This document shows positions 5,701 through 44,409 of a stretch of 64,000 nucleotides of DNA, in pieces (the stretch's first letter is position 1; each line of letters opens with the position of its first letter). The position numbers and the translations under genes are program-made. Origin of the DNA: Macrostomum lignano (Eukaryota); the NCBI GenBank assembly GCA_002269645.1, contig NIVC01000928.1, positions 1 to 64,000 of the forward strand, written 5' to 3'. The notes below the pieces were generated by a model. That model searched no databases. It was given only the letters and a program-made list of their open reading frames with translations, and was not told the DNA's origin.

Positions 5701-8700
5701 AGCTGTCGGTTGCACATCTGGCCCAATTATTATTTATTATTATCCAAAGATGGCAAACTTTACAGATCAGGCTTGGAGCGGCTTGTAACTAATTTGCAGG
5801 CTGTCATTGCATGCAGTTAAGTAAATATTACAAATAATTATTTCGCAAAACTGTGTTACCTTGGGAACCAAGATTGACACGAGATTAGCCACCATTCCGA
5901 TCAGTATGGAGCCGTTGACAAAAATTGACCAAATGTGTCCGCTCGCGATTTTCTGAAAAAAAAATAAAAATGTGTCAAAATGCTTACCTCTACTATGTAA
6001 GTAGACTAATGCGGATTTTAAATTCGCAACTCACCATTCGATCTGTTGTGAAGGCCACAGCGCAGGCGAACAGCGTGGTTAAGGTGACGAACGAGAACAG
6101 GTAAATTGGCACCATGGTCATCGAGCTGGAATGAGCGCGAGTTAATTGGTGAAAAGCATCTCATAAAACCAGCCTAAATGCTGGATTGTTTGCATTTGAT
6201 TGGCATTGGGAAATGACAATAAGGGGAAAAAGGCTGAGTTGAGCTATCGACACTTCAGGATTCAAGTCGAGTGCTCTGCAAAGTTTGCAATAAGCACTTT
6301 ATGAGTCTCATTTAGAAGAGAGAGCAGGGCTCGTAACAGTTGAAAAATTATGGTCAAGTGAGAGACTTGGAAACTTCTGCAGTCTGGCTGAAGTCTCATA
6401 TCCTGGCTGTCTATGGGGATGATGAGCAGCTTTGATTAGCAGGTTGGTCCAAATTTGATGGCACTGTTGCCAAAACTAGAAATTCACTCGCTTTAACAGT
6501 TCAATATTAGTCCGCACCTCGAATCCACCGCCAGTCTGCATACCCTCAACCTGTCTACCAATCTGTGTCCCTATCTACCAATCTGTGTTCCTATCTACCA
6601 ATCTGTGTTCCTATCTACCAATATGTGTCCCTATCTACCAATCTGTGTTCCTATCTACCAATCTGTGTTCCTATCTACCAATATGTGTCCCTATCTACCA
6701 ATCTGTGTTCCTATCTACCAATCTGTGTTCCTATCTACCAATCTGTGTTCCTATCTACCAATATGTGTCCCTATCTACCAATCTGTGTTCCTATCTACCA
6801 ATCTGTGTTCCTATCTACCAATCTGTGTTCCTATCTACCAATCTGTGTTCCTATCTACCAATCTGTGTTCCTATCTACCAATCTGTGTTCCTATCTACCA
6901 ATCTGTGTTCCTATCTACCAATCTGTGTTCCTATCTACCAATCTGTGTTCCTATCTACCAATCTGTGTTCATATCTACCAATCTGTGTCCCTATCTACCA
7001 ATTTGTCTCCTTATCTTCCTATCTGTTCTCTATATCTACCAATCTAGCTCCCTATCTACCAATTTGTCTTCCTGTCCCTACCTACCAATCTGTTCTCCCA
7101 ATCTACCAATCTGTGTCCCTATCCACCAATATGTCTTCCTACCAACCTATACCAATCTGCCTCCCTATCTAGTACACATTAATTCACAATCAATTATCTA
7201 TCTCCAACTATACCCACACTGAACTTACCTACGCTGAGTCAGAATTTGAACGCAAAACGTGCCAGTGAGAAAGGCCAACAGAAGACAGCTGACTTCAATG
7301 GAGAAGTAGGGATCTCTCACGGTGCCGAACTGCAGATAGAGAGTTGCAGCGAAATGAACAAAATATATAAGGATGGTTAGGCTGTAACTATGAAGTTGAC
7401 CCAGTTTATAATCCAAACTTTAACTCACACAGTGGGCAATAGTCTGACCTAGACTGTGACCTAGACTGTGACCTAGTCTGTCAACCAGCCTGTGACCCAG
7501 ACTGTGACCCAGACTGAGACCCAGACTGTGACCCAGATTACGAGTATGACCCAGACTGTGACTCAGACTGTGACCCAGACTGTGACCCGGACTGTGACCC
7601 AGACTGTGACCTAGTCTGTGACCTAGACTGTGACCCAGACTGAGACCCAGACTGTGACCCAGATTATGACCCAAACTGTGACCTAGTCTGTGACCTAGAC
7701 TGTCAACCAGCCTGTGACCCAGCCTGTGACCCAGACTGAGACCCAGACTGTGACCCAGACTGTGACGTAGTCTGTCACCTAGACTGTGACGTAGTCTGTC
7801 ACCTAGACTGTGACCTAGTCTGTGACCTAGACTGTGACCCAGACTGAGACCCAGACTGTGACCCAGATTATGACCCAAACTGTGACCCAAACTGTGACCC
7901 AAACTGTGACCCAGACTATGGCTTTTATCAACAATAATCCTGATAAAAATATTCCCGACCTTCTTTTCCAGCCGGGGAAGCTTGAACCGCAGGTTGACGG
8001 GGTGGCAGTGCTCCTGGTACAAGCTGTCGATGGTATGAGACTGGATTGCCGAGCTCAACGCTTCGTTGATTACTGCATCATTGACGCTTCGAGTTCGGTT
8101 GCCGTGATCATCGACTCCCATTCTAGTGGCGATTGTTTAGAGTAGAGTAAAGTCGAGAAGAGTAGAATAGAATAGAGTAGAGTAGAGTAAAGTAGATAAG
8201 AGTAGAGTAGAATAGAGAAGAGTAGAGTAGACAAGAGTAGACTAGAGTAGAGTAGAGTAAAGTAGATAAGAATAGGGTAGAGTAGAGTAGAGTAGAGTAG
8301 AGAGTAGAGTAGACTAGACTAGACTAGACTAGACTAGAGTAGAGTAGAGTAGAGTAGAGTAGAGTAGAGTAGACTAGACTAGACTAGACTAGACTAGACT
8401 AGACTAGACTAGACTAGACTAGAGTAAACTAAAGTAGAGTAGAGTAAGGAGTAGAGTAGAATAGACTAGACTAGAGTAGACTAGACTAGAGTAGAGTAGA
8501 GAAGAGTAGAGTAGAATAGAGCAGAGAAGAAACAAGCAGACTAGAGCAGAGAGTAGAATAGACAGTAGCAAAGCACCAATGAAGCCAGGTATGCAAAAGC
8601 AAAACTGACCCAGCCACCTTTTATGAATGTGAGATGCCGGCCGCCTTCCCTGACCAGCAGGTTCTGCTGCATCGCCGCAGTGCTGAGGCTGCTGCTGCTG

Positions 8701-11700
8701 GTCAGCCGGCACCACCAGAAAAGTTTTCACCCGATGCTCTCTCAGATAAGCGTGCCGGCTTTCACCTTCGCCGTCCTCAAAGCTGTAATCTCCGCCGAGG
8801 CTGTCGCGGGTCACCTCGGTGATGTGCACCCGGCCAGGCCGGCCGCTGGACTCCAGGATCTCCGCCAGGTAGACGTCGCCCGACCAGACGTCGAACTGCA
8901 GTTTGTCGCGGCCGAGAACTCCGCAGATCACCGTGCCGGTGTGAATACCGACTCTCATGTCCACCGGGGCGTTGGTCATCACGCGGACTAGTCTGCCGAT
9001 ATGTATCGATAATAGAATTAAAGCCAAGCAGATTTAAAAAATTTGCCGATATGTATCGAAGTTAAAATAAAATCCTGTCTATTATACATGGCCTATCTTA
9101 TATAAATGTTCCCGTATATAGGGTTTGCCAATTAGGAGCCGTAGCCCAGTGGTCCAGCGCGGCGCTCTGATGTACCAGCGGCCCAGGCTCGATTCCCAGT
9201 GTAGCCACACATTAATTTGGGGCTAAATTGGAATCTCGGCTTGGCTCTGCTCGGGCAATTAACGCCCTTGAGAACCAACCCCCCCCCCCAAGGCGCAGTG
9301 AAGTGTACATGCCTAACGATAAATAAAGTCGGGGCCACTGTACACTCCTGTGTGAGTGCCTGTGCGTATGACTGCGTACGTGTCTGGGCGCTTGTGTGCC
9401 TGCTCAGGGGAGTCGGCGGAATGGGCAGTAATGCCTCTCGCCGGTTGTGTGACAATTTCGCCTAAAGTGCGCTTAAAGTCCCCTTTGCTGGCTGCCTCTA
9501 GGTTAGCCAGTTTAGGAGTTTTACCGATATGTATCGAAAGTCAATTTAAATTACACGTTCAATATGTATCGAAGATTGAGTGGGAATAACACTCATTTTC
9601 AAACATTGCCGATATGTATCAAAACTGAGCTTACTCATAAATCATTTTCAAGCTCGTACTCGTATTTTAATAAGTCATGAGCATAAACTGACACTTTAAA
9701 ATTTTATTAGCCCGCCCAGGCAGTCATATTTTATCGATGATGAAGAGCTGCTCCACAGTCCAATAAATTATGCTGGAGTTCGGCCTGAAGCCGGGGCTGC
9801 CGTCCGAAATTCGGGACTCCCGCTGAATCTGGGCCGCTGTGCCCAGGATTTGGACCGCAACAGCATGTACAGTCTGAGCCATGTGGGCTGGCCTTCATGG
9901 GTGTGAATTGACAGACCCCCCCCAAGCACCAAACGAACGCGTTTACGCACAAAATCCAACCAAGGGCCGTGTGGTGCAAAAGTCAAAAATAAAATTTCAA
10001 GCTCATGAAACTTTAAGCTTGTGAAAGTCGCACGAAAAAAAACTGGTGCTGATGATATCGAATGTCACATCGTCGAAACTAAACTTTAATAATCTTAATT
10101 ATTAAAACGTTTGAGGCCCACTCACGATATGGTGGAGATCATGTCCAAGCCCATCTCAACGCAGCACTTGGCGTGGTCGGCCCTGGGTTCCGGCAGTCCG
10201 GACACGCAGTAGTAGCAGTCACCCAGCAGCTTGATCCGCAGGCAGTTGTTGCTTTCAGCCAGCTGGTCGAATCTGGCAAACAGAACGTTGAGCAGCCGGA
10301 CGATGAACTCCGGGTCGTTCTGACGACACAGCGTGGTGAAACCGCAGATGTCCGCAAACAGAATGCTGGAAATGCCGAGTCATCTTGGTTCAATTCTGTG
10401 CATTCAAAAAACTAATCATTGATTAGTTATCGAGCCAGCATGACACACTGTAGCACTGACGCATAGTTCTCATTCATGGTCATTGTGACACGAGGCGAAG
10501 TCGGAATTTTGCAGGAAATTTGAAGAGGCCATCAAGATAAGTCGAGTGCTTAGGTCGAAGTGCATAAGTAACTCTCTGGGATTTTAGAGATGCCGACAGC
10601 CTTGAGAGCTGAAAATTAGCTGCTTAAGGATTAAGAAGTTCTTAATGACGACAGGTAAAAGTCTCAGTCAGAGCCGGCTACGGCCTGTTGACCTGAGTTT
10701 GAGGGAGTTATTCGCACTGCATAGTCTCTGCAGTTCCGCCCTTTGCTTGCCTCATCCTCTTTAGGCTCTCCTTCTCCGTCTAAAGCTGTCTGTTTTCACT
10801 TCGTGACTCCGACTTTGAATTTTCATTTCCAGCATCTTTGCTCGTCCCCTCTTGTTCCTCGTTCAGCCTCCACCAGAGATTAATATAGCCTGCATAATAA
10901 GTGTACACCAGGCAATGCAGCTACACCTGCCAAAGTCAACGAATCAAAAAAACAGCCCGACCCAGCTTGTGAAATGCAAACATGCAGCTACTGTATGCAT
11001 GAAGTAGAAAGTTCCACTTTAACTATTTTATATTTGTACGAATTCTCTTTTGGCTACCAGTTTAGAAGATGTTTAATCTAGTGGGTAAAGTGGGTATAGT
11101 AAGCCTCAGCATTAGCTTCAGAAGTTGCTAAAATCAAAATTAGATTGTATCTTACTTAAGTACGAAAGGTACTTAAATATACTTCAGTATTATTCATTTT
11201 TCGCACTCAGTCATGCGTACAAAAAATTCAGATGTACATTTGGCCTTCGCTGGGGGGGGGACGAAATTCAGATGTACATTTGGCCTTCGCGGGGGGGGGA
11301 CGAAATTCAGATGTACATTTGGCCTTCGCGGGGGGGGGACGAAATTCAGATGTACATTTGGCCTTCGCGGGGGGGGATGAAATTCAGATGTACATTTAGC
11401 CTTCGCGGGGGGACGAAATTCAGATGTACATTTGGCCTTCGCGGGGGGGACGAAATTCAGATGTACATTTGGCCTTCGCGGGGGACGAAATTCAGATGTA
11501 CATTTGGCTATATACTTGATCTTGGTCTATATACCAAGAAATTGATTAATTAAACAAAACATTAAAAACAAAACACGTCTTAGAAACCGAATGTTGCTAC
11601 TCACCTAACATTTTCATGTCTCTGTATGTAAACTTTGTTAAACATCGATCTGTGCGCTGGATTCTTCTCGGGATGTAGCAGCGGAGACGCCACGTACTCC

Positions 11701-14700
11701 GGCAGAAGCGACAGTATCAAACGGTCCTTGGGTAAATCAGTTTGTTAATTTTACTATTACATTTTTATACAGAAGAACGTTACAATCGTCATTTTTTACT
11801 CCTCTTGACTGAGCGGGTGCTGTTTATCCCGAATCGATTTAAGGATCTGTGGTGACCACTAGGAATGATTCGAAAGTTGCTACGCAAGAAAACCATTGAA
11901 GAAAAAGTAATTAATTCCCTTTGGTTTTTGCAGGGCTTCTCGTGTGAGGAAAAGTATCAGCAAGAAATCATTGAGTAGAATAGACTCACTTCGGCTGCCT
12001 GGATACTTTAAGCTCTGGGCTTGAACTTCGATCTTATTGTGGCCAATGTGACAGCAGACCCTAATGCATTCGCTCTCATTTCCTTTGAGTTTATAAGGCT
12101 TCCTGTTTTGATTTTTGTCTTATGGATTTTATGCTTGTTAGTCTCATCAAAGTGAAATATTCGCCTTCACTTCCCGCCATTTCTCTTTGCAGAGTTTCCC
12201 TAGCCGGCGCTCACCAGCTTCTCCATTTCCAGCTTGGCGCGCAGTCCGGCTTCGTAATAGCGCCTGGTTTCCAGGAAAGTCTGCCGGCGGCCCATCTCCA
12301 CGGGGCCGTGCACGAAAACGCCCACTATGTTTGCGGCGAGCAAGTAGAACGCGTTGGCCGCAAGCTGCATGCAAGGGCAATGGGGGTTCAATGTACACCA
12401 GCCAGCTGCTACGGGGTGAAGAATTCAATATACATTGGCCATGTCACTGTGGGGTGGGAGTTCAATGTACATTGGCCAGCCACTGGGGGATAGGAGTTTA
12501 ATGTACATTGGCCAGCCACTGGGGGGATAGGAGTTCAATGTACATTGGCCAGCCGCTGAGGAGATGGGAGTTAAATGTACATTGGCCAGCCACTGGGGGA
12601 TGGGAGTTCAATTTACATTGGCCAGCCACTGGAGGGATGGGAGTTCAATGTACATTGGCCAGCCACTGGGGGGATGGGAGTTTAATGTACATTGGCCAGC
12701 CGCTAAAGGAAAGGAAATTTAAAGTAAATTATCCAGGGTATGGCAAATTGTTGTACCGATTAGCCAATCAATCTGTCAATGCGAGTTACGTGATTCAATA
12801 TTACGGAAACTAAAGGTCGATATGACGATATCAGAACAGAAAAGTGACAAAAAAGCTTTTATCACACACAAAAATTTTGACTACCACTACCAGCTCGTCA
12901 CGAATGTGATTTCTAATCCGTGAATTAAGGAACCAGTTTGAGAGCTTAATCTCTACAGAAAACTTGCTAGATCCGATCCAAAAGAATGCAGAAATGTTCT
13001 GTCTACCTTCAGCCTGCGAGCGTCAGTCGATGTGACTGACTCGGGGACGGGGTGGACTCCGGCCGCCCCCCCCCCCCAGGGGCATGAGAGGCAGGACTTC
13101 TCACAGTTGAGTGCGCAGGCGAGTGGACGACAGGCCTTTTGCCCGTGATCTTGTCGGGCCTAATTAGAGCGAGGCGGCCGTCAGGGTGTGAAAACGGGAG
13201 AATGTGGAGCAAAGATAAGATCCCGCTCGCTTCATTCAGCTGCTCAGTTCCTACTGGCACTGATACATTTTCTGACGTGACCTCCAACCAATAAAAGCTG
13301 CATTTTCGTGCAAGGTTATTTGGCTTAGGCTGACATCGCGTTTAAAAAGCAGTGAGCTGTTTACGCTTGAGCAGTCATCAATTTGAGAACGGTCGCCCGC
13401 GTGTCCGGTGGATATTCAGGTGGGGGCGAAGTGACCTCGGATGACCTTTTAGTGCTTACCTCGAATGGCAATCATCAAGGTTTGAGAAACCTTGATAATT
13501 GCCATAATTGGGAGAAAATCACACGCTCTTCTAATTGCACTCAAACGTGGAACTGTTGAAAAATTACCCGTTTACTCTGACTACAACCCGGGTGTAGCGG
13601 CCAAAATCCCAAGATTTCGACGCTACCCTAATTTATTAAATCAAATCGGGATTCGGGCAGACAAGATGATTTATTTGCTGCTGAGCCATTGAGTGTCTCT
13701 GAAATCTGGTTGAAAAGCAATGAGCCTACTCGCAGAATTGCTACAAAGTGTAGCGATGGCGAAGATGCTGGTTCAAGCGAGAGACGCCACCCCACTCCAG
13801 CTCGCGTACCCGAGCACCGAAATCCGGTCGGTTCATTCCAGAAATTCTAGACAACAGGTGCAGCATCATGATGAGGCCGCAGCAGGCCAGCAGGCTGCGA
13901 ACACGCAACGGCAAGAACAGGTAGGCGATGACCGTCATCAGCGAGCTGGTGAACAACCCGCTGCTCGGCTTCCAGCACAGCGGATCTGGCTCCTCGCCGA
14001 TGCGAATGACGCTGGCGCCCTGCAGCAGCAGGAAGCAGATGGCCAACCCGTAGCTCAGGTGCTGCTGCCGGGCCAGGCCAACGCGACAGCGCAGCATACC
14101 AATCAGGAGACCGCTGAAGCCGGCGAAGGCGACAGTGGAGAGGCTCAGGTGCAGCAGGGTGTTCTCAGATGGACCGCGGGCCGTCTGCGGCAGCTGCGTG
14201 ACGGCGGAACCGGCGCTCAGAAGCGTCAGCGTTGCCACCAGAACGAGCAGGGAGCGATGGTTCAGCCGGCGAAAGTACATCTGGTAGAGCTGCTCGAGCT
14301 CGGCGCCTGGGAACACCTTGGAAGAGAAGAGGCACTTGAACAGGATGGCCAGGAAGCGCCAACTCTCAGCGCAGTTCGCCGGCGGCTTGGTGTGCAGCAG
14401 GTCGCTGATGGTGTCCCGGTTCGGGTCCAGGCGCTGCAGGGCAGAGCTGTGCGACGATTCGGAGTCTCTGGGCCGAGTGTTCCATCGACCGCTGCTACTG
14501 CCAACCTTGCTGCCGCCGCGCGCACTGGCGGTGCCGCCGCCTTCGCTGCCACCGATTCTGACAATTTTCGTCGTTCTCTGAAGTCGCTGCCAGCCCGACG
14601 GGCGATCCGGGTTTCTTCGAAGCATTCGGGCGACTTCCTTCGGCGCCGATATTTGGTCGCCGTTGCCGACTGAAACTGGATCGGCGTCCACCATCGGGGC

Positions 14701-14715
14701 CGGGTGGACGCTCAT
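2713..14715 (-). CDS. ADCY: Transmembrane adenylyl cyclase (class III, ADCY5/6-like N-terminus), 11 coding exons
   Basis: Exons traced with GT-AG: 14715-13810, 12364-12215, 11726-11605, 10365-10126, 8992-8618, 8122-7960, ~7417-7229, 6125-6035, 5952-5860, 5323-5189, 4551-3769 and the terminal exon 3053-2713 (12 segments counting the last). C1 motifs: [41 protein letters not shown]2 motifs: [50 protein letters not shown]. The Lys/Asp ATP-specificity pair and the catalytic Asn/Arg are present. There is a 1-nt frameshift near 3913 and a phase mismatch at 7960/7417. Confidence 0.93.
3395..3742 (+). repeat. 25-nt minisatellite (aactgacacaataccaaacagacac)n in cyclase intron
   Basis: Visible tandem units; reverse complement of the array at 4605-5035. 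Confidence 0.9.
4605..5035 (-). repeat. Same 25-nt minisatellite, inverted (agttgtgtctgtttggtattgtgtc)n
   Basis: The unit is the exact reverse complement of the 3395-3742 unit. Confidence 0.9.
5481..5724 (+). mobile_element. tRNA-derived SINE family A, full-length-looking copy in cyclase intron
   Basis: Pol III A-box-like (tagtggtcagagc) and B-box (ggttcgattccc) head. The body cacccagctgtaaaatgggtgccagcattagctggggtaattgagggt is shared with 17209-17453. AT-rich tail. Confidence 0.75.
6550..7170. repeat. 20-nt minisatellite (ctatctaccaatctgtgttc)n
   Basis: Tandem units, degenerating at the right end; intronic. Confidence 0.9.
7440..7920. repeat. 12-nt minisatellite (gactgtgaccca)n
   Basis: Tandem units in cyclase intron; source of the (HSLG)n ORF tail. 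Confidence 0.9.
8140..8520. repeat. (AGAGT/AGACT)n pentamer microsatellite
   Basis: Direct reading. Confidence 0.9.
9135..9478 (+). mobile_element. SINE family B copy 1 (tRNA-like head)
   Basis: Head ggagccgtagcccagtggtccagcgc...ggctcgattccc (A/B-box-like). Collinear with 20641-20959, including the long shared block gtgtgcctgctcaggggagtcggcggaatgggcagtaatgcctctcgccggttgtgtgacaat. Confidence 0.7.
11225..11508. repeat. ~38-40-nt minisatellite gaaattcagatgtacatttggccttcgc(G)n ac, ~7 copies
   Basis: Tandem units with a variable G run. Confidence 0.85.
12415..12702. repeat. ~35-nt minisatellite ggagttcaatgtacattggccagccactggggga
   Basis: About 8 tandem copies in cyclase intron 1. Confidence 0.85.
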
Positions 14716-16136
14716 TGCCGTCCTCAGGATGAAGTTTCTGTGGCTTCTGAGTGCTGATTTAATTGGATCCTGCAGCAAGATAGAAATGGAGTAGTTTTGT
14801 TGGTGCTCTACAGGTATTAGCGGGTTACCGTATTCAACAACAACGCAAAAAAGGTCTTGTGTTTTCACAAAGTATGAGCAGCATCACAGGGCAAACGTCG
14901 CGTGTGTTCAAAGTACTCAAAGTACTTATAAAGGTAATTCACAACGAAAATCGGTTAAAAAGTCACAAGGAAGACCTCAATCTTCTTTAGAAGATCATCT
15001 TCGTTCACGGAAAAAAAATCATGCGGACGCACAGACAGACAGAACCAATTCTGTATATTTCAGGTAGGGACGATTACCGGTATTCAAATAGGAATACCTA
15101 CGAATTTTCAAGCGTTGTAGCTGAAACCTTGATTCAGACTTGGCTTTGCCGCCGCTTCCGAACTCGAAGAGCTCTTTCTTCTTTTGCCATGCAACTCGGG
15201 CAGATGGAGAGCTGTTTAAATAGCCGTTAAAGCCTCCCTCCAGCTTCGATTAAATGCATTGGTGCAATGTTGCCGCCCCAGCTCGGCTGTTTGCTCACCA
15301 GAGTAGATAAGGAAGCAGGGTCGGACTTGAGCAAGTGAGGCTCTTAGCAACAGCTGAGGCCAAACTAAGATTTCGTATGAGATTTGATAATAAAGAGAAC
15401 ACGTGTGTTTCTGAGATTCTGGGCCACCCACATCCTTAGGCTTATTCTACTCGTACTCGCGTAGACGTGCCGCATCGATATGAATTTTGTCAGGCCCAGC
15501 TTCCCAGCTGCATCACACATTGGAGTAGTCCTTCAGACTCGATAGGCAACAGTCTGACTGAGGTTGGACTTAGCATAAATCCCGAGCTGATACCGCTGGG
15601 CCTTCGAACTCAGACTTTATGAAGTCTTTTCCCGTGAAACATAAGTCAACTCTGGTTGAGCAAGCATGAGATAAGAGCACAAAACTGCTGAGGCAAAATG
15701 TCAGGCATCGTGGTGTGATGGAAAATCTGTTCTCGGAAGCTTATCTGTTACTGAAATTCGAAAGACAACAAAAATTTCGCTTACAGTGTTGATGAAGCGG
15801 GATTCTGTGCGGTATAAGAAAGAAAAGCACAGAAATGCAATTGAAAATTTTATGCACGCGGGCTTCGCACATTCAAAAATCAATTTCGATGATTGCGGTG
15901 AGGTCATCGCCACAATCAGTCTTTTTGCCTGCGTTTATTGTCATCTCGTTCAACGGTTACTCAGATTGCTGAATAAGTAGTAGAAATTATTTATTAAAGC
16001 TGCTTGCAAATTACTTTATTGACCATTTTGGCAGGAAAAATAGTCAATTTTCACTTGAATCTCAAATAGATGACAAGTTTGCTTTCTTTAAGTGATCGTG
16101 TTGTCAGTTGGTCATTCATTTCTGGATCCTTGACTG

Positions 16137-17569
16137 TCACTCCGAACGCTTTTTTAGGATGTCCCGGTCCAGCATGAAGTCGGGGTACCTGGTGAAGCGT
16201 TTCTTCAGAATGCCCCGGTCCAGCATGAAGTCGGGGTACCTGGTGAAGCGCTTCTTCAGAATGCCACGGTCCAGCATGAAGTCGGGGTACCTGGTGAAGC
16301 GTTTCTTCAGAATGCCACGGTCCAGCATGAAGTCGGGGTACCTGCTGAAGCGTTTCTTCAGAATGCCCCGGTCCAGCATGAAGTCGGGGTACCTGGTGAA
16401 GCGTTTCTTCAGAATGCCCCGGTCCAGCATGAAGTCGGGGTACCTGGTGAAGCGTTTCTTCAGAATGCCCCGGTCCAGCATGAAGTCGGGGTACCTGGTG
16501 AAGCGTTTCTTCAGAATGCCCCGGTCCAGCATGAAGTCGGGGTACCTGGTGAACCGCTTATCAAGGTGCTTGATGCCGTCGTCCTGGTGAACGTTCTTCG
16601 TATCATCATGGTGCTTCTCTGCACCAGTTACATCCAATCTGCAAGGGAGAATGCAAAACTTCAGAATTAGACCACATGTAGCTGAAGGTCTAGCAAGTCC
16701 AGTTTGCATTCAGTGCCAGTATTTTCTTCAAGGGGCCACCTTATCACGAGCTAAACTTAATAAAAATGTAATCAAATCCGTCTCTGCGACCCTGGGCGTC
16801 TGTCTCTTGTCACGGAATTTTGTGTTACTACGCAGGCCAAAAGCTCCTCAGACATCTCAAGAGCTCTTCTGGTGAAAAGAGACCTTGGGCTTCTCAGTTT
16901 AGACCACAGACGCCCCTATTTATTCCAGATTATGTAAGCCCAATGATTAAAAGTTTATATGCATTTTACAGTCCACTGGGACTGCAGATGATCTCTTGTC
17001 AGCGTGTGTCCCATCCCAAATCTTGGGTTTCAGATCTGAAGTCGCATAGGAAAGACTAATGCATTGAGAAGCTCTACAATGAAAGCTCAAAGGCCAGAGG
17101 TGACAACTCAGAATTTCGCTATCCGTTCAAGAAGTCGTGTTCTATCCGCTTTCCTAGTTTTGAATTGGGTCCTCGCAGCAAGAGGCGGTCTGTTGTTAGA
17201 CCAAAAATGTGTTGTAGCCTAGTGCTTAGAGAGGGGTTCGATTCTCAACCTACTTAAAAATTGTATCCTTAAGCAAGACACCTAATTCTGCATTGCTTCA
17301 CTACACCCAGCTGTAAAATGGGTGCCAGCATTAGCTGGGGTAATTGAGGGTGAGTGTGGGGACCCCCCAGTCCTTGGACTGAACAGCCGTACGCAGCCTT
17401 CAGATGCTTCAGAGCTGTCGGCTGCAAATCTTCCCATTATGGCAGGTGTAATGAAAAATACAAATTTTAAGACATGTCATTTAAACTATTTAGCTGGGCA
17501 GATAGTTACTACAGGAACTCACACCACGGCGCCGAGCAGGACTATCGACAGAATCAATGGCGATCGCAT
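16137..17569 (-). CDS. Secreted neuropeptide/prohormone precursor, 182 aa, 2 exons (17569-17523, 16638-16137), 8 x F(T/S)RYPDFMLDR(G/D)IL
   Basis: Exon 1 (ATG..gtg gt|GTGAGT) joins in phase 2 to ttgcag|a ttg gat. This gives MRSPLILSIVLLGAVVLDVTGA (signal-peptide-like), then EKHHDDTKNVHQDDGIKHLD-KR and eight 17-codon units ending KKR, then SE*. Variation between units is mostly synonymous (CGG/CGT, AAA/AAG). AATAAA lies at 15990-15995. Confidence 0.88.
17209..17453 (+). mobile_element. SINE family A copy in the prohormone intron (antisense to host)
   Basis: Shares cacccagctgtaaaatgggtgccagcattagctggggtaattgagggt...ccccccagtccttggactga with 5481-5724. Has a degenerate tRNA head (tagcctagtg...ggttcgattc). 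Confidence 0.7.
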
Positions 17570-17757
17570 GGCAAAGCACTTTCTATAGTCAGAAGCGGAG
17601 CCTCTTCAGAAAGTTTCTTTCAGAAAGAGGGTCTTTTTAATTGTTGAGAGACTCTATCGCTGGGAAGCAGATGGCTCGGTAATGAAGACAAATGCGCTTG
17701 GAATAAAGGAAAAAGTTTTTATGCCAGCGACTCGGCTCTCTGGGCTAGAATGCGCCG

Positions 17758-17866
17758 TTATAAAGGGAAGCGTCACTGGGAACTCGCGCGCCTCCACACC
17801 CCGTCCCCTGCAGCAGTCGCAGCCATCGCATCCGCGCCTTCTCTCATCTTCCCACCCTTTCATTGG
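17758..17866 (-). promoter_or_regulatory. Candidate core promoter of the prohormone (TATA-like TTTATAA at 17764-17758, CCAAT at 17866-17862)
   Basis: The motifs lie ~190 and ~295 nt upstream of the ATG in the correct orientation; motif match only. Confidence 0.35.
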
Positions 17867-18061
17867 CTGCTGGGCCTCCTCGCCATATTCCTATGCCTTT
17901 GCGGGAAAGAAATTGAGAAGCGTTTGAAGAATCGCCCGGTCTAAAGATGATTAATTGACAGGGTCAGAAAAGCGACTTCATCCTGGCCATCTTAATTTAA
18001 GAATTGAGGGATGACCTGAAAGCGTATTGAAACTCAAAATTTGAAACTTAAAAGTTAAGCG

Positions 18062-18925
18062 ATGGGCGCTGCGGTGGGATTTTAACCCTCAGGTTGCAGA
18101 GGTGGGATGTGAACCCTCGGGTGGCAGCGGTGGGATGTGAACCCTCGGGTGGCAGCGGTGGGATGTGAACCCTCAGGTGGCAGCGGTGGGATGTGAACCC
18201 TCGGGTGGCAGCGGTGGGATGTGAACCCTCGGGTGGCAGCGGTGGGATGTGAACCCTCGGGTGGCAGCGGTGGGATGTGAACTCTCGGGTGGCAGAGGTG
18301 GGATGTGAACCCTCAGGTGGCAGCGGTGGGATGTGAACCCTCAGGTGGCAGAGGTGGGATGTGAACCCTCAGGTGGCAGAGGTGGGATGTGAACCCTCAG
18401 GTGGCAGCGGTGGGATGTGAACCCTCAGGTGGCAGAGGTGGGATGTGAACCCTCGGGTGGCAGCGGTGGGATGTGAACTCTCGGGTGGCAGAGGTGGGAT
18501 GTGAACCCTCAGGTGGCAGAGGTGGGATGTGAACCCTCAGGTGGCAGAGGTGGGATGTGAACCCTCAGGTGGCAGAGGTGGGATGTGAACCCTCAGGTGG
18601 CAGAGGTGGGATGTGAACCCTCAGGTGGCAGAGGTGGGATGTGAACCCTCAGGTGGCAGAGGTGGGATGTGAACCCTCAGGTGGCAGAGGTGGGATGTGA
18701 ACCCTCAGGTGGCAGCGGTGGGATGTGAACCCTCAGGTGGCAGAGGTGGGATGTGAACCCTCGGGTGGCAGCGGTGGGATGTGAACTCTCGGGTGGCAGC
18801 GGTGGGATGTGAACTCTCGGGTGGCAGAGGTGGGATGTGAACTCTCGGGTGGCAGAGGTGGGATGTGAACCCTCAGGTGGCAGAGGTGGGATGTGAACTC
18901 TCGTGTGGCAGCGGTGGGATGTGAG
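18062..18925. repeat. 28-nt minisatellite (ggtgggatgtgaaccctcaggtggcaga)n, ~30 copies
   Basis: Direct reading. Confidence 0.92.
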
Positions 18926-20184
18926 TCTTCAACCTTTATTCAAGATCGTCTCAAATTCAGAAGCCACATAATATTCACTTACTTCTCGGTACCTCGATAA
19001 TATGCTGAAAATATAATTTTTTCTCACCCCTCCCCACAAAACAAGTGCACCCACTGAAACAGAAAATAATTGATTTGGCTAGAGAAATCAATCACTTTAT
19101 TGTGGGTGGCAGTGATGTATCTATTTTATTCCCTTCAATTCTTTCTCTCTCTCTACTTGTAATCCCGACCCTTGTTCCCCCAGTTTCCTTCTATATCGTT
19201 TCCTTCCAGCATCCATCGCGAAACAGATGAAGCGAGCGGGCATAAACTGCCTGGATATTTCAGCTCGCACAGACAGGCAGGAGATCCCAGAACAATCCCT
19301 GTTCCCCCGACCCCAATTGCACTATTTGATCAGCAAGGGGAGGCAGCACACGGCTTGCTCTCTTTATCAGCCCCTGCTCGCGCTAATTGAGTTATAAGCG
19401 GACAGGAATGATGCAGGGAGTTGAGCTCTTGTCTGACCCTGTCAGGACTGAGGCAATTTAAATCCGGGCCCTGAGAGCCCAGAGCCAGGTTTAAAGTTTC
19501 TCGCTCCTGTGTGATGACTTTTTCGACTAAAAACTTGCTTAAAAAGCTCATCGGCTAAACTTGTTCCGGACTTGTTACTGTAGGGGAGACTTTCTGAGTT
19601 TGTTTGAGTTCTCTCATAGCTACATGCTCGCAAAAAAAGATTATTAAAGTTTCAAGTGAACTTTTGCAACACTGTCCCGATGGGGCGTGGATAATCTGAG
19701 ATTATTCAGACCCAGCGAACAAAAATCCATCATCCAGACCAGACACTGATAGCGGTGTTTGCAGTTGAAATATTGTGTCAATATGTACATTTAATTAAGC
19801 AAATCGAAAAGTTTCACCTGATTGGTCTGAGAAATGATGGTGTCCGCGTTCTCATTTGAAAAACAAGTTTGACTAATCGGTCGGTCTGACTATTTTGAGC
19901 TGAACTCAAACAATGTTTTTTCCATTTCTCCCACAGCGAGCGGTAAGGCAGATCCGCTCCGTTCCGCTGACTCCCGAACACGCGCTCACACAGGGTGTAC
20001 CGGTACAGCTGCCCTGACTTTATTTATCGTCAGGCATGTGCACTTGGAGGTGTTGGCCAAGGACCACTAGGAACACTTCGTTAGTCTAGTCTAGGCTAGT
20101 AGTCCTTGGTGTTGGCTCTCATGAGTGTGAATCGTACGACAAGACTGACCAATTTTGATGTGTCCGCTCACGGAAGGTTGAGCG

Positions 20185-20365
20185 GCATTCAGAGAGTTGA
20201 GCAGCATACAGAGAGTTGAGCAGCATACAGAGAGTTGAGCAGCATTCAGAGAGTTGAGCAGCATACAGAGAGTTGAGCAGCATACAGAGAGTTGAGCAGC
20301 ATACAGAGAGTTGAGCAGCATACAGAGAGTTGAGCAGCATACAGAGGGTTAAGCAGCATACCTGT
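20185..20365. repeat. 19-nt minisatellite (agagagttgagcagcatac)n
   Basis: Direct reading. Confidence 0.85.
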
Positions 20366-20640
20366 ATAGCTAGCATTAGTCACGTGCCGGTAAACAGAGC
20401 GAAATTAAGATAATTGGCCTCCGGCATCAGAACTCAATGCCAGCCAGCAAGTATAAATACATATCGCCTAATTAGCAAGTCTGAAGCATTGTTAGAAACC
20501 AAAGTTGATTCATCCCAATGCGAGTAGAAATATCTGGGAATTATATTTTTAAAAGGCAGTCGCATTTGCCTATTTTCAGCCTTTATGCATTCACCTCTTC
20601 TGTTTGCTAATCATGCGAGTGTCACAGGTGCCACAAATGA

Positions 20641-20959
20641 GGGGGCGTGGCCTAGCAGGCTAGCGCGGCGTTCTGGTGTGCCAGCGGCCCAGGCTCGATT
20701 CCAAGTGCAGCTACAGATTATTTAGGGGCTAAATTGGAATCTCGGCTTGGCTCTGCTCGTGCAATTAACGCCTTTAAGGGCCAACCCCCAAGGCACAGTG
20801 CAGTGTACACGCCTGCCTAACGATAAATAAAGTTATGGTCGCTGCCTGTGCGTATGACTGCGTACGTATCCGCGCGCTTGTGTGCCTGCTCAGGGGAGTC
20901 GGCGGAATGGGCAGTAATGCCTCTCGCCGGTTGTGTGACAATGTCGCTTAAAGTGCGCC
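20641..20959 (+). mobile_element. SINE family B copy 2
   Basis: Collinear with 9135-9478 (ggggctaaattggaatctcggcttggctctgctc...aaagtgcgc). Confidence 0.7.
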
Positions 20960-21379
20960 AGGTCCCTGCCAGTAACAATGCATTATTCTACTCATGGTAG
21001 CAAGCAGACTTGGATTTTACATCAAAACCTAGAAAATATGAAAATAAGAATATTCCACTTTACCTACGCGTTGCCTTTACTACTACTAAAAGTAGGTGAG
21101 AAAAAATTTCTGATTGCTTTAAATTCCAAAAGCTGGACGCTTGTTAAAATAATCTGGAATCAAAGATTGCATTTTATTTTGTTGGGTGCCTGCAGGCATG
21201 CGATTGAGTGGAGGAGGTGCTCAATGCTTTGGAAAAATCGGATGTGTTTCCTAGCAAACAAAATGCTACAATATGATCATAATAAATTACAGAATGTGAG
21301 CTGTGCTAAATTGCTTGAGTAAATAAGGTGACAGAGAATCTTTTCAGATGTGCAGTCTCTTCTTCATCGTCGATAGACA

Positions 21380-21905
21380 GTTCTCATCACTATGACCATA
21401 CTCATCACTATGACCATACTCATCACTATAACCATACTCATCCCCATGATCATCCTCATCACTATGACCATACTCATCCTCATGACCATCTTCATCACCA
21501 TGGCCATCCTCATCACTATAACCATACTCATCACTATAACCATACTCATCACTATGACCATACTCATCACTATGACCATACTCATCACCATGACCATAGT
21601 CATCACCATGACCATAGTCATCACCATGACCATACTCATCACCATGACCATAGTCATCACCATGACCATAGTCATCACCATGACCATACTCATCACTATG
21701 ACCATACTCATAAACATGACCATACTCATCACTATAACCATACTCATCACTATAACCATACTCATCACTATAACCATACTCATCACTATAGCCATATTCA
21801 TCACCATGACCATAGTCATCACCATGACCATACTCATCACTATAACCATACTTATCACTATAACCATACTCATCACTATGACTATACTCATCACCATAAC
21901 CATAC
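21380..21905. repeat. 18-nt minisatellite (catcactatgaccatact)n
   Basis: Tandem units; open in three frames (His-rich, ITMTIL, MSMVIV). Confidence 0.85.
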
Positions 21906-22089
21906 TAAGAAAATTTGCATCACCATCAATAGGATCCTTCCCAATGAACACCAGAAAAGCTTTACGAGTCCAGGTAGTATTTGCTAGAGCTTGCATGCCT
22001 ATAACAAAATTTGATCAATAAACGTCTGGGATCACTACTGCCTGCATCCCATTATAGCAGGACCCCCCACAGAGTGACCGAGCGACTTC

Positions 22090-24654
22090 CTAGGCCAGAC
22101 TGAAGTGCAGCTCCGTATTTGCCGGCAGCGCGGCCCGGGCGCCGAGAACCGCGTGCGGCGACACGCTGCAGCCCAGCAGGTTGAGGTAGACTAGATTCGG
22201 GCATCCGTTGGTTGCTAAGGCCGACAGGCCCTGTTGAAATGGAATCAAAATAACAATTATAACATGAAGATTCGTGAAGGTACCGTGATATTCACGCAAT
22301 CGCATTGCAACTCTCACCCCACTGATCCATGACGCAATTTCATTGCAACTCTCACCCACCTGATCTATGACGCAATCGCATTGCAACTCTCACCTGATCC
22401 ATGACGCAATTGCATTGCAACTCTCACCCACCTGATCTATGACGCAATCGCATTGCAACTCTCACCTGATCCATGACGCAATTGCATTGCAACTCTCACC
22501 CACCTGATCTATGACGCAATCGCATTGCAACTCTCACTTGATCCATGACGCAATTGCATTGCAACTCTCACCCACCTGATCCATTACGCAATCGCATTGC
22601 AACTCTCCCCTGATCCATGACGCAATTGCATTGCAACTCTCACCCACCTGATCAATTACGCAATCGCATTGCAACTCTCACCCACCTAATCCATTATGCA
22701 ATCGCATTGCATCTTTCACCTGATCCATGACGCAATTGCATTGCAACTCTCACCCACCTGACCTATGACGCAATCGCATTGCAACTCTCACTTGATCCAT
22801 GACGCAATTGCATTGCAACTCTCACCCACCTGATCCATTACGCAATCGTAGTGCAACTCTCACCTGATCCATGACGCAATCGCATTGCAACTCTCACCCA
22901 CCTGATCTATGACGCAATCGCATTGCAACTCTCACTTGATCCATGACGCAATCACATTGCAACTCCCACCCATCTGATCCGTGGAGCGATCGCATTGCAA
23001 CTCTCACCCACCTGATCCATTACGCAATCGCATTGCAACTCCCACCCATCTGATCCGTGGAGCGATCGCATTGCAACTCTCAACTGATCCATGATGCAAT
23101 CGCATTTGCAACTCTCACCCACCTGATCCGTGACGCAGTCGCATCCGCGAAGGGTCAGTCGGGTGAGTCTGGCTGAGCAGCCGCCAGCGCTTGCCAGTGC
23201 AGAGACGGCGTCATCCGTGACGTCGCAGCCGCCGAAGTCCAGCTCCAGCGGCGGCCCGGCCGGCCCGAGTCCGCGAGCGAGCCGTTCGACGCCCAAATCG
23301 GTGACGCGTCGGCAATCGCGGAGGCTCAGCTGCCGCAGGTTGGTCGCTCGGATCGCGATGTGAAAGAGGACTTCGTCGTTGATCTGAGAGCGATTGTTTG
23401 GTTAAGGTTGGCATCTTGCATCTTGAAAACTTGCAGTGTATTGAATTTTGATTGTCAAAGTGTTTTCAAACTAATCTGCGCTGAAACTCTTAGGTTTTAT
23501 CAATAAAGTCAGTCAGTCTCTGGCCAGACCTCTAGGTGGAAGGTCCGCTAGACGCGGGCAGAAAGGTAGGTCTGCTGTTTCCATACCCGCGGAGAATATG
23601 ACAATGAAGCCTCCATATCCTGTACAGCGATATCCATCGATTTAATGTAAAAGTACGCGTCTGTCAGCGACGTTGCTATGCTAGACGTGTGCAGTCGTTC
23701 ACTCCAAGGTTCAGTGACTGGTGGACTCTCCCAAGGCTGGGTGAAGCGCATCAGACGCACGCACACACAAACAACACAGCACACAACAGCAGGGCAAGCA
23801 ATGAAGACTTACACCCTCGCAGCGGACCAGAGCCAGACTTCGCAGCCTTCGTCCGCACCGTCGCAGCAGCCGCTCCAAGCCGATTTCGCTGATGTCACCG
23901 CCGCTGTCGGCAAGACGGAGCTCGCGGAGGCCGGGGCAGCCGCCGCCGGAGCCCAGCGCCGCCAGGCCGCTGTCGGTTACGTTCGGACAACGGCGCAGGC
24001 AAAGGCGGCTGAGGCGCGGGCACATTCCGTCGCCGAGGGCGCGCAGGCCAGAGTCGTCGACGCCGCGACAGTCGGCAACTTCGAGGCTGATAAGACACGG
24101 CGCCGCCACCGGCAGGGCCAGGGTGACGCCGTGACAGGCCGCCAAGCGCAGATGGCGAAGGCGCTGGCAGCCGTGGAGCAGCTCGCGGGCGCCGAGCGCT
24201 GTCAGGCGCGGACAGGCGCGAAACGCGGCTCTCTGGAGACGCGGGCACCGGGAGCCGAGCAAGCTGAGCGCCCTGTCAGTCAGGGTGATGGAATTCGCCA
24301 CGCTGACTCGAAGCAGGCCCAGGCAGTGCGGGTAGCTGGCGTAGCTGAGAATCTTCGTCACGCTGTCGATGGCCGCGTTGGCATCCAGGCGAGGATCGTG
24401 CAGCTCCAGGCCGGTCCACAGAGCCGGGTGCCAGGCGAGGCGGTACCAGGAGCGGCAGACGGCGGCACAGCGGCACAGCTGAGGCGAGTCCAGGTAGCTG
24501 AAAGCCAGCAGGAGGACTCGGTCTGGCAGCTGCGGCTGCGCCGGCTCCTCCCGCTGCTGCTCCCGGAGCCAGCGCATGCACTTTCCCGACGGGTTCAGCG
24601 CTGTCGCTTGACAGTCCTCGACGTTCGCCTGTGGCTCTGCGCATGGTTCGGCAA
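22090..24654 (-). CDS. FBXL7: F-box/leucine-rich-repeat protein, FBXL7-like; exons ~24654-23813, 23383-23123, 22230-22090
   Basis: F-box LPDRVLLLAFSYLDSPQLCRCAAVCRSWYRLAWHPALW closely resembles FBXL7 (QLCRCARVCRRWYNLAWDPRLW). It is followed by Cys-containing LRRs (LxxLxLxxCxxVTDxGL). All three junctions are GT-AG and phase 0. First ATG is at 24577; an acceptor at 24655 suggests an upstream exon or trans-splice site. Confidence 0.88.
22300..23142 (-). repeat. 34-38-nt minisatellite derived from the FBXL7 exon/intron junction
   Basis: Minus-strand unit gcgattgcgtcatggatcag-gtgggtgagagttgcaat equals the last 20 nt of the exon plus the first ~18 nt of the intron. Confidence 0.85.
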
Positions 24655-25339
24655 CTGTTTTTGTTACTTTGTAGCTATTAAAAGAATTCCTTATAAAATT
24701 TACTAAGAGCATTAGTGAGACTTGTCAAAATCAAGGGAGCTGAAGTGCAGTAATGAGAACACGTGCCTAAGCTTATACTGCCTAATTGTATTTTCATGAG
24801 TTAACTCCTACCCTTCAAGTGACTAGATAAGATGGGCGCTAGTCAGTCGGGTGATGTACATATATTGTGGTCCTAAATGTACGATGAATGGCTACAACCA
24901 CCAAGAAAGCTTGTGTGTGGCTGTTTGTGCATTTATCGTATCACTCATCTGAAGAGGCCATCTCGATTGTCTGCGTGCTTATGTCAATTATTACAAAAAC
25001 ATACACATGCGCATATTCAGCCATCCCCACAGATTCTATATTACCGACATGTCCCTAATGTACTTGGCAGCCGTCTCCGAGGCCCCGAAAACCCAGGGGT
25101 TTGGGCCATAGACACCAGCTGCTGCTGCTGCTGCTAATGTCTTGAGAGCCAAGCGAAGCAAGTATCGCTTTTGACGATCAAAATGAGAATTTTAACAATC
25201 AAAGCGGGACGCGCCATAGACATTCAAGCCAGGCCACAGATCACACTCTAGTCATGGACTCAAGCAGTTTAGCAAAGTCTACTGAGGGAGCCTTGGCCAT
25301 AGACTATAACTTTGGACACTCAATATGGGAAAAAGCCAT

Positions 25340-26730
25340 TCAAAACGGGAATCGGGCTGAGATTTCATCATAGCTCTCTGTCCCTCCCTCCCCGTTTGCT
25401 TGTCTTTGTCCTGAAAGCGACCCCCATTCAATGGCGCCACCAATTCCTGCAGCAGATTGCCAGCGGCTGATTGATGCGGTTGAGCAAGGGTCAGCCATCG
25501 CATGAGCTGCAACAATCGTGCAAACAACCGCATTCTGAATCGCTGCCAACTTTCGACTCGATGGCAGAGTGCAGAATCCCTTCCACGCGGTGGTCGGAAA
25601 GAAGGATTGTGCAAGGCCGGTCAGGAAATGAGAGAATTCTTCGTTGAGAAACTCGATGAAATTCCTTTCCTGACGCTCAAGGAGTTCTGACTTAATTTTG
25701 TTTTGCTTTCTGTAACGAACACTTTGTTCACTTTTAAATATTTCAGTGGCCCAGAGATATAAAGAGTACATCAAGTTGGGTGAATTCCAGTTTTAAATGG
25801 CTTTTTCCCATTTCGATTGTCCATTCCACAATCTATGGTTGTGTATTCCCAAGCAGCCCAAGTCTGTGGCCTGGCTTGAATGTCTATGGCGTCCCGTTTT
25901 GATTGTCCGAATTCCCATTTAGATCGTCAAAAGCAAGTAGTGCCACCCGCTAGACCAAGTGAGCTAACCTTGCGCTGTCGGAGCTGCTCCGACGCCTCTG
26001 CAGCTGCTGCCGCTGGCGCTGGCGCTGTCCAGATTGTAGCACAGCCGGTAGAATCGCCGACCTGCCTCTGAGTTGCTAATCACTCTCTGCGCCAAACTCT
26101 GAGCTAGGACAGGCTCAGCCTCAGCCTCGTTGTCGTCAGCAACCGCGTCAATGTCTATGTCAACAAACCGCGGCTTGGTAATGCGTTCAGTCTCCGTTCT
26201 GTCAATGGTTTCGCCCTCTTCGAAGACGACCGCACCGTTATCGTCGCTGCGGTTGTCCTCGTCGGAGCCACAGCTGCTCCAGGAGTTTTTAGAGTCCTCA
26301 GAGACGTCCGACCGGGACGGGATGAGATGGACGAACGTGTCTCCGAAACGAACTGACGGCCCTGAGCCACCGACGTCTCTGGCCGGGGCGGAAGCGGCTG
26401 CCGAGGCCACCACGGAGCAGCTCTCGTCGCTGACTATACCGGAGGTCAGGGAGTCGTCTCGATGCGACGGCAGCGTTGCGAAACACAGGTGCAGCGGCGC
26501 CGGCGGCTGCAGCAGCTGTCTTGGCGGAGGCGGAGGCGGCTGCGACGCTGGGTTTCGTCTTCTCAGCACTCGATGCTGCTGTGGAGGTCGCTGCTGCTGC
26601 TGCTGATCTTGTTGTTGCTGCTGTCTTAGTCGATCAATCGCCATGCGACTCATACTGCTCAACTGTTGATCCCTGGACTGCGCTGTTCGGTCGGGCGCTA
26701 CTGCAGGAGGTCCGGGCGACCCGGTCCAGC
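25340..26730 (-). CDS. Uncharacterised protein, last two exons (~26730-25967, 25686-25340)
   Basis: Long GC-rich open frame (Q/P-rich, SVRF, acidic stretch, RFYRLCYNLD). Donor caag|GTTAGC (phase 1) fits acceptor tcag|aa ctc, giving ELLERQERNFIEFLNEEFSHFLTGLAQSFFP...*. No family recognised. Confidence 0.5.
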
Positions 26731-33038: not shown

Positions 33039-33557
33039 TCGGGTAAAAAAATGGTGAATTCTTGATGCATCTCTGAGGATAAAATAGCATGGAATTACGA
33101 GCCACTGTCTTTGCCCTTACTAAGAAGAGTGAGGCCATAAAAGGATGCCACCTGCCTCTGCTAATAGCAGACGCAGGGCATCTCATTTTGTCTGAGATTA
33201 CAGTTTATCACGCTCGCTAGTTGTCTGTCACTGCCTTTGAGTATGTAAATTCAGGTGTCGCACGAGACTAGCAACAAAAAGTATGCTCGTGCTCCTATAG
33301 AAGTGTAGCACTAATACGGGGGCAGTCAATGGTCTGTCCCGCTTTGCAATGTCTTTTTGTCTCCGAGTAAGAGCATCAATAGCTCTTATCTAATTACGAG
33401 GGTAGTAAAAATGTTCTGTTAGCTTGTTTTGTTATAAATCTGCTGAGCAAACCATTTTTATTAATTTCTGCTATGCATATCGTAACATTGTGAGTTTAAT
33501 CTCATGATCTACGGCTTGAAAGAGCTCTGGAAGCTGAAAATTTAATGTTTTGCCATC

Positions 33558-34810: not shown

Positions 34811-35324
34811 CCATATTCTAATGGGCTAAGTAATTGTTTGGGGATTCTAGAAAGCTCCTGTAGTTTTGTTTTTGACTGTCCGACATTAAAGAGCTTTTTG
34901 AACCTAACGTACCGCGCGACAAGGTTCCCAGACTTTGTCTGAGCAAAAGATAATTTATCAAGGCATCCCAGCTGAATATCTCCCCAGTGGATTTGATGCC
35001 CGAATCGAACTCAGAGCACTGCATCTAAAATTAACCCAGCATGTTAGGCAGGGCCCGATGCACTCAATTCTCAGGTTCGTGAGAGTCGCGAACTCGTCTT
35101 TTGGATCGAACTTTTTTCTTTTTTTTTCTTGGCAGTTCTGAGTTTAGGCGGCGCCGTTGGACATTAAATCAAATTTCAATCTGTACTTTTACATTTTGTC
35201 TGCTGCTGTTGGTTCGTCTGTTCTTTAAATACGAGCTTTGAAATGAAAGAAACTCTCGTCTGGACTAGAATGTTTTGTCATCTTCTGCAGATGCTCGGAA
35301 GGCCTAGAGATTTGGGTGGATTAG

Positions 35325-44380: not shown

Positions 44381-44409
44381 GGGTTAGGGTTAGGGTTAGG
44401 GTTAGGGTT
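44381..44409 (+). repeat. Short interstitial telomeric tract (GGGTTA)4GGGTT
   Basis: Perfect TTAGGG repeats. Confidence 0.75.

Follow-up and report, generated by a model that had tools for sequence, protein, structure and literature searches.

Is a 51-nucleotide (nt) tandem repeat in minisatellite-rich flatworm DNA simply another minisatellite, or does it encode a secreted multi-peptide precursor, and if so, to which peptide family would the product belong? The question is raised by the minus strand of contig NIVC01000928.1 of Macrostomum lignano, of which we analysed positions 1-64,000 (hereafter the window; all coordinates refer to these 64,000 nt, and identifiers such as P0001 and L001 denote retrieved proteins and loci). 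The array lies in the second exon of a two-exon gene, the predicted product of which is probably a secretory prohormone of 182 amino acids (aa) with eight peptide copies, and as such a neuropeptide candidate.

Tandem Repeats Finder (TRF) reports one 51-nt array at 16159-16553, with 7.7 copies, 97% matches and no indels. Read in the coding register, it resolves into eight exact units of 17 codons, each translating into a 14-mer and a closing KKR. Six of the 14-mers read FTRYPDFMLDRGIL, one FSRYPDFMLDRGIL (unit 5) and one FTRYPDFMLDRDIL (unit 8); the array is preceded by ...HLDKR and followed by Ser-Glu and a stop codon. Relative to their consensus the units show ten differences, of which eight are silent changes at third codon positions and two are non-synonymous (T>S and G>D). 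This reproduces an earlier note on this DNA that had described a coding repeat with KKR-ended units and mainly silent variation. When the 17 units of the window and of a second, syntenic locus (L001, described below) were considered together, 9 of the 11 distinct nucleotide variants were synonymous in the proposed frame, whereas a single-base change made at random in the consensus unit would be synonymous in 23% of cases (35% for transitions only). This synonymous excess has P = 6e-5 under random changes and P = 0.002 under the transition-only expectation. The array can be read through without a stop in four of six frames; the other open frames are silent at 6/11 (antisense frame 1), 1/11 and 1/11 of the variants, and the two frames with stops at 2/11 and 1/11. 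The peptide sequence is under purifying selection, and this selection is specific to one frame.

The same frame can be followed into a complete N-terminus. A 47-nt upstream exon, proposed in the earlier note, joins exon 2 in phase (47 + 502 = 549 nt) to give the 182-aa product, which begins MRSPLILSIVLLGAVVLDVTGAEK. Exon 1 ends with ...GGT/GTGAGT (slashes mark splice or cleavage positions), TTCTCCCTTGCAG directly precedes the start of exon 2 at 16638, and exon 1 contributes MRSPLILSIVLLGAV, most of the signal peptide, together with 2 nt of a codon completed in exon 2. An identical junction is found in P0001, the hypothetical protein BOX15_Mlig001732g5 of M. lignano and the sole real match among 5.8 billion clustered proteins (E = 8e-66), whose first 44 residues, spanning the exon junction, are the same as those of the spliced product. 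Its locus, L001 (NIVC01000393.1), is collinear with window positions 6245-25567 (about 19 kilobases, kb) at 92-95% identity and is about 98% identical across the prohormone gene, including an intron of 883 nt; such synteny would fit the duplicated blocks described for the sequenced DV1 line of M. lignano (PMC5730564). The Mlig_3_7 GenBank annotation was built only from transcript data, namely RNA-seq (StringTie/TACO) and mapped de novo transcripts with TransDecoder (PMC5730564), and P0001 is therefore RNA evidence for transcription and for the splice between exons 1 and 2, coming via the L001 model at the syntenic locus and not from reads of the window locus itself. The prohormone gene is transcribed and spliced as predicted. 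Frame-breaking copy-number variation, which the earlier note had named as damaging to a coding array, was not seen: the L001 array (11016-11474) holds nine in-frame units against eight in the window, a difference of exactly 51 nt, while the pre-repeat coding sequence is identical at both loci and the two differences in unit 1 are both synonymous.

Minisatellites are very dense in the window (about 80 TRF rows in 64 kb, for example at 33555-34813, 36640-37757 and 56043-59103), and in several arrays whose period is a multiple of 3, such as an 18-nt His-rich array at 21383-21906, multiple frames are open. A non-coding minisatellite that is open by chance in a transcribed region, with the protein as a TransDecoder artefact, would suit this abundance, the four open frames and the equal similarity of intron and exons between the two loci. 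The last point deprives the coding reading of an exon-versus-intron contrast in conservation; since intron and exons alike are about 98% identical, the comparison says nothing either way. We regard this explanation as very improbable, since the 9:2 synonymous excess is confined to one frame, the 51-nt period (17 codons) is free of indels and its copy number differs by exactly one unit, every unit carries a basic cleavage site, a canonical splice carries the frame on to an ATG and a signal peptide, and a transcript-derived model exists for L001. Among the minisatellites of the window, the 51-nt array stands out beyond chance: most of its variants are silent in a single frame, which splices into a hydrophobic N-terminus.

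Features of the prohormone gene and its immediate flanks, in window coordinates
Feature	Position	Strand	Remarks
Region just 5' of ATG	17570..17600	-	CTCCGCTTCTGACTATAG/AAAGTGCTTTGCC
Exon 1, coding part	17523..17569	-	47 nt from ATG; identical 47/47 in L001; N-terminus of P0001
Intron	16639..17522	-	884 nt, phase 2; donor GTGAGT, acceptor TTCTCCCTTGCAG
Exon 2, pre-repeat part	16554..16638	-	end of signal peptide (VLDVTG/AEK), spacer AEKHHDDTKNVHQDDGIKHLD, first KR site
Repeat array	16146..16553	-	eight tandem 51-nt units, each 14-mer + KKR; units start at 16553, 16502, 16451, 16400, 16349, 16298, 16247 and 16196
C-terminal Ser-Glu + TGA stop	16137..16145	-	identical in L001
Two AATAAA poly(A) signals	16020-16015 and 15995-15990	-	motif matches only

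The public gene model differs from the genomic sequence in the number of repeats. P0001 carries four units although the genomic DNA of L001 has nine, and a 255-nt GT...AG gap (CAG/GTACCC...CACCAG/) placed in the nine-unit array reproduces the 114-aa P0001 exactly, from which we conclude that the model is collapsed; a CAG/GTACCC site is present inside every 51-nt unit. The likely cause is an artefact of short-read transcript assembly or alignment, and in-frame alternative splicing of the 255-nt gap, which would tune the peptide copy number, is possible. Transcripts overlapping repeat annotations were removed before the GenBank submission of M. lignano (PMC5730564), which would account for tandem-peptide genes looking hidden. 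For the present gene, which the earlier note had called hidden, this is true of the program-made track of open reading frames (ORFs), where only a 190-aa ORF with a poor N-terminus is listed (16709-16137; an exact-sequence look-up of this unspliced ORF returned no record), and it does not extend to the databases, in which the collapsed four-unit model is public as a hypothetical protein. Tandem-peptide precursors resemble minisatellites, which creates a blind spot in annotation; because of the repeat filter and the collapse of the surviving model, similar prohormones are probably under-annotated in the repeat-rich genome of M. lignano.

The predicted precursor has a regular anatomy. Its signal peptide, assessed by heuristic features (n-region, Kyte-Doolittle hydropathy and the (-3,-1) rule), agrees with the hydrophobic leader noted earlier: it has an Arg in the n-region, an h-region of 13-14 residues with Kyte-Doolittle values >2.4 (9-residue mean up to 3.3) and a site conforming to the (-3,-1) rule at VTG/AE, after residue 21 (G21). 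The spacer AEKHHDDTKNVHQDDGIKHLD comprises 21 aa and is acidic and His-rich, with 6 acidic, 3 basic and 4 His residues. Basic sites are found at residues 43-44 (KR) and then after each of the eight units (KKR), bounding every copy; because no Gly precedes any of them, the predicted peptides would be non-amidated with free C-termini, in line with the dibasic cleavage originally suggested. The mature peptide would be near-neutral, with an isoelectric point of about 6 and a net charge of about 0.

In the processing pathway that we propose, the signal peptide (residues 1-21, cut at VTG/AE) would direct the product into the secretory pathway, a PC2-type prohormone convertase would cleave after KR44 and after every KKR, and a carboxypeptidase E-type enzyme would remove the basic residues. 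Released would be eight non-amidated 14-mers (six of FTRYPDFMLDRGIL and one each of FSRYPDFMLDRGIL and FTRYPDFMLDRDIL) and the 21-aa acidic spacer peptide. Each unit, together with the preceding Arg, also forms an RF[TS]R/Y (RxxR) motif, at which general convertase rules would allow an optional extra cut giving the 11-mer YPDFMLDRGIL. For this gene the scheme of signal peptidase, PC2-type cleavage and carboxypeptidase trimming rests on analogy, and it is well grounded in this respect because nervous-system expression and an essential role have been reported for the PC2 homologue of M. lignano, RNA815_2403.2 (PMC4490696), and because planarian PPP-1 and PPP-2 give rise to non-amidated, KR-flanked 11-12-mers ending in -LL that were confirmed by mass spectrometry and whose levels fall upon pc2 RNA interference (RNAi) (PMC2953531). 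The peptides would most likely be neuropeptides or peptide hormones acting through a G-protein-coupled receptor (GPCR); we infer neuronal expression, processing and bioactivity from the precursor architecture alone.

That architecture does not specify a cell type. A secreted multi-copy precursor of non-neuronal origin, cleaved by furin or PC-type enzymes into exocrine or gland, antimicrobial or pheromone-like peptides, would be compatible with it, prostate or seminal, adhesive-gland, pharyngeal and epidermal secretions being the candidates. Several planarian prohormone genes are in fact expressed in testes, gland cells and the copulatory apparatus (PMC2953531), and the gene identifier was absent from the three supplementary datasets of M. 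lignano in which it was looked for, a point that weighs against a neuronal assignment. Nevertheless, we hold the non-neuronal alternative to be unlikely: the near-neutral charge of the peptide is unlike that of cationic antimicrobial peptides, tandem identical short peptides spaced by KKR are a hallmark of neuropeptide prohormones, and the nearest sequence resemblance is to neuropeptides.

This resemblance leads to the question of family. The earlier note had found the peptide unfamiliar, with a faint hint of pedal-peptide-type (MLD) sequences. Starting from planarian PPP-1 and PPP-2 we retrieved P0008 and, through it, a family from which 38 distinct units were collected, including P0012, the Platynereis dumerilii protein V5TCS9 ('Pedal peptide neuropeptide 2 MLDpeptide'), with P0008 and P0010-P0018 as its relatives. 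P0008 (L002; Logan ERR550402, a 1271-nt contig) is a complete MLD/pedal-peptide-2 precursor with seven copies of MLDxIGxxL[LI], and P0010, P0011 and P0013-P0018 are further members from metagenome/SRA assemblies. In this family a signal peptide is followed by a spacer ending in x-KR and by tandem units of the form KKR/MLD[x][IV]G[x][x][LI][LI]/KKR, MLDRIGSSLL and MLDHIGSGIL being two instances. The end of the window unit, FMLDRGIL/KKR, equals MLDHIGSGIL/KKR with H replaced by R and a three-residue deletion; R occurs at that variable position in other family members, and with this one gap 9 of the 10 last residues, the KKR site included, match a real family unit. Directly before the basic site a hydrophobic pair is found both here (...GIL/KKR) and in the family (...GIL/KKR, ...SLL/KKR and ...GLL/KR), in each case non-amidated. 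It is plausible, albeit unproven, and in our judgement close to an even chance, that the peptide descends in strongly derived form from the spiralian MLD/pedal-peptide-2 (planarian PPP) family. Such a flatworm offshoot would have kept MLD at the start, the hydrophobic pair -IL at the end and KKR as spacer, would have lost three core residues (including the I of D-x-I-G) and would have gained the N-terminal extension FTRYPDF.

The strength of the similarity was assessed with composition-preserving shuffles and depends on how the alignment is made. P values were 0.06-0.47 in the shuffle test against 17 PPP and P0008/P0009 units, 0.04-0.18 for local (unanchored) alignment and 0.006-0.05 for glocal alignment, the latter two against the 38 family units. 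With the C-termini anchored at the cleavage site, the best score gave P 0.018-0.025 and the mean score P 0.003-0.005 (z 3.2-3.5), z ranging over 2.4-3.5 across the anchored tests with two gap settings; this anchoring was chosen after the MLD resemblance had been noticed. Ten unrelated planarian peptides, used as negative controls, all performed worse (best P(mean) = 0.03, in one of the two gap settings), and the positive control RFYNDPLGVALL, a divergent true member, reached P <= 0.001, stronger than the window peptide. The anchored P values are suggestive, short of proof.

Several results weigh against descent from the MLD family, beginning with the first two of these tests, in which the window peptide did not score significantly above shuffled sequences. 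The D-x-[IVL]-G core, present in 38/38 family units, is absent from the window unit, which reads D-R-G-I-L; the unit does not conform to the motif [MFVYL]-[LMIFY]-D-x-[IVL]-G-x-x-[LIM]-[LI], and its alignment needs the three-residue gap. The peptide does not begin at MLD. A C-terminal RQLDE[IT]xEGxIG(R) peptide, present in P0008 and P0010-P0018, is absent here, where the protein ends with ...KKRSE and the stop codon; it is absent from planarian PPP-1 as well. Searches with the PPP-1/PPP-2 profile and with P0008 retrieved no Macrostomum protein, those with P0001 and the 182-aa product retrieved no PPP/MLD protein, a full HMMER pass over 1.84 billion representatives gave P0001 as the only real match, with no homologue beyond M. 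lignano, and the search of 5.8 billion clustered proteins likewise gave no homologue outside this species. P0002-P0007, TPR proteins and unrelated repeat ORFs that came up in the HMMER search with P0001, were inspected and dismissed as relatives, and in Pfam the 182-aa product matched nothing above threshold, the weak hits HTH_45 and EutK_C being noise.

These observations would be accounted for if the same precursor, processed in the same way, belonged to an orphan family of the Macrostomum lineage, the MLD...GIL-KKR resemblance being due to convergence or chance. To this we give somewhat less than an even chance. The lack of homologues beyond M. lignano, the non-significant unanchored tests, the choice of anchoring once the match was known, and the want of the core, of the MLD start and of the conserved C-terminal peptide all speak for it. 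On the other side are the anchored P values of 0.003-0.025, better than those of 10/10 negative controls, the single gap that brings 9/10 terminal residues into register with a real family unit, the R of which occurs in members, and an N-terminal F-x-R-Y that is reminiscent of the planarian PPP-2 peptide FRYFDKIGSDLL. The PPP-1/PPP-2 profile and P0008 searches also turned up no canonical PPP/MLD protein from M. lignano; given that transcripts overlapping repeats had been removed from the GenBank annotation, this negative counts for little in either direction. Put more broadly, we tentatively entertain, at a little under evens, that FTRYPDFMLDRGIL represents either a neuropeptide family confined to Macrostomum or macrostomorphs, with no sequence link left to any bilaterian family, or a pedal/MLD peptide without its invariant core. 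The faint hint of the earlier note has been strengthened by the retrieved MLD precursors, while its other suggestion, a new family, may yet be right.

Among the known systems close to this precursor are those of MLD/pedal peptide 2, with which it shares a signal peptide, a spacer ending in x-KR, tandem short non-amidated peptides and KKR/RKR spacing. Within the peptide, the common features are MLD plus a variable residue, a Gly further on, and two hydrophobic residues (-LL, -LI or -IL) at the C-terminus, before KKR. It differs in that the peptide is a 14-mer with the seven-residue N-terminal extension FTRYPDF, whereas family members start with M/F/V-L-D right after the basic site; in addition, the core is broken by the three-residue deletion, RQLDE[IT]xEGxIGR is lacking and the similarity is marginally significant. 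PPP-1 and PPP-2 of Schmidtea mediterranea (Collins et al. 2010, PMC2953531) are flatworm precursors of similar size (96-154 aa), and their peptides (FRYFDKIGSDLL and RSFYDPIGGGLL), which KR or KRR sites flank, have an N-terminal aromatic/basic extension before an acidic residue that resembles FTRY. However, their core [YFM]-D-[PKS]-I-G-x-x-L-L is not found in the window peptide, pairwise scores are no higher than those of shuffles, and the spacers are KR there and KKR here. Generic multi-copy prohormones, such as those of the FMRFamide type and planarian SPP-15, have the same architecture and presumed processing pathway, and Smed-SPP-15 even has eight near-identical copies (8 x FDPIQFamide), but the window peptide has no amidation signal and is unrelated in sequence. 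Smed SPP-12, NYMDFFGLNGDMQRF, has an ungapped Y-x-D-F-hydrophobic-x-x-x-G in common with the window peptide, which we judged to be at chance level. The wider pedal peptide/orcokinin superfamily (molluscan pedal peptide, arthropod orcokinin and nematode NLP-14/15) consists of non-amidated multi-copy peptides some 11-17 aa long, which carry an aromatic/aliphatic-Asp motif at the N-terminal end and a Gly-hydrophobic stretch at the C-terminal one. With these the window peptide shares a loose motif only (D-x-hydrophobic ... G-hydrophobic), without alignment support.

The peptide also appears to be new to the literature. The 14-mer, four of its 6-mers and the gene identifier had no match in the full-text-searchable literature; an earlier description is possible in McVeigh 2009, which reportedly mined Macrostomum expressed sequence tags, or in Koziol 2016, which is reported to deal with parasitic species only. 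None of the planarian prohormone sequences in the supplements of Collins 2010 (PMC2953531) contains 4-6-residue fragments of the 14-mer, and no neuropeptide catalogue for M. lignano was found in the literature. An uncharacterised, collapsed version of the product is already in the public databases as a hypothetical protein. What is new to the searchable literature is its nature as a multi-copy prohormone, together with its peptides.

The architecture of this prohormone is conventional and will not surprise a specialist; its use lies in flatworm neurobiology and in the caution it offers to annotators of repeat-rich genomes. Regeneration, stem cells and sexual conflict are studied in M. lignano, a model open to transgenesis, and the gene offers a ready neuropeptide candidate with practical handles: the peptides have defined masses to look for in peptidomics, in situ probes could target a short stretch of unique sequence at the 5' end, and RNAi could target the array itself. 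If the MLD/pedal-peptide link is true, it shows how far the conserved core of a spiralian peptide can be eroded in an early-branching flatworm lineage. If the orphan family is true, the model would have an orphan ligand, and a core-less pedal/MLD peptide would be an example of a neuropeptide family drifting past recognition.

At the ends of the gene, the TATA/CCAAT-like motifs upstream and the AATAAA downstream listed in the earlier note fared differently. AATAAA motifs are located 116, 141 and 197 nt past the stop codon, and the position of the first two implies a 3' untranslated region of roughly 120-160 nt. The TATAGA motif nearest the ATG is doubtful as a TATA box for this start because it is only 18 nt upstream; further TATA-like and CCAAT motifs at 153, 195 and 297 nt upstream are motif matches only. 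TATAGA lies within CTTCTGACTATAG/AAAG, a context that resembles a branch point and 3' splice site and may be a spliced-leader trans-splice acceptor; trans-spliced genes make up 38.8% in M. lignano (PMC5730564). A tRNA-derived short interspersed nuclear element in the intron is unsupported because ARAGORN found no tRNA-like gene anywhere in the 64-kb window.

Immediately downstream of the prohormone gene and on the same strand are exons of a transmembrane adenylyl cyclase (3751-4590, 8419-9027 and 13741-14868), with one AC_N match, two matches to the Guanylate_cyc catalytic domain and long minisatellites in its introns. A two-exon rhodopsin-family GPCR with DRY and NPxxY motifs is encoded on the plus strand some 32 kb away (49311-49796 and 50487-51308), matching positions 1-102 and 104-260 of Pfam 7tm_1. 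Its best relatives of solved structure are galanin receptor 2 (3e-46) and then somatostatin, opioid and apelin receptors, on account of which we place it in the allatostatin-A/C-like clade of peptide receptors; no evidence connects it with the prohormone peptide. An F-box ORF and an adenosine-deaminase ORF (editase, A_deamin; ADAT1/ADAR-like), at 23711-24712 and 60407-61291 on the minus strand, are ordinary cellular genes. Finally, 4.8 copies of the telomere-type hexamer GGGTTA form a short interstitial stretch at 44381-44409.

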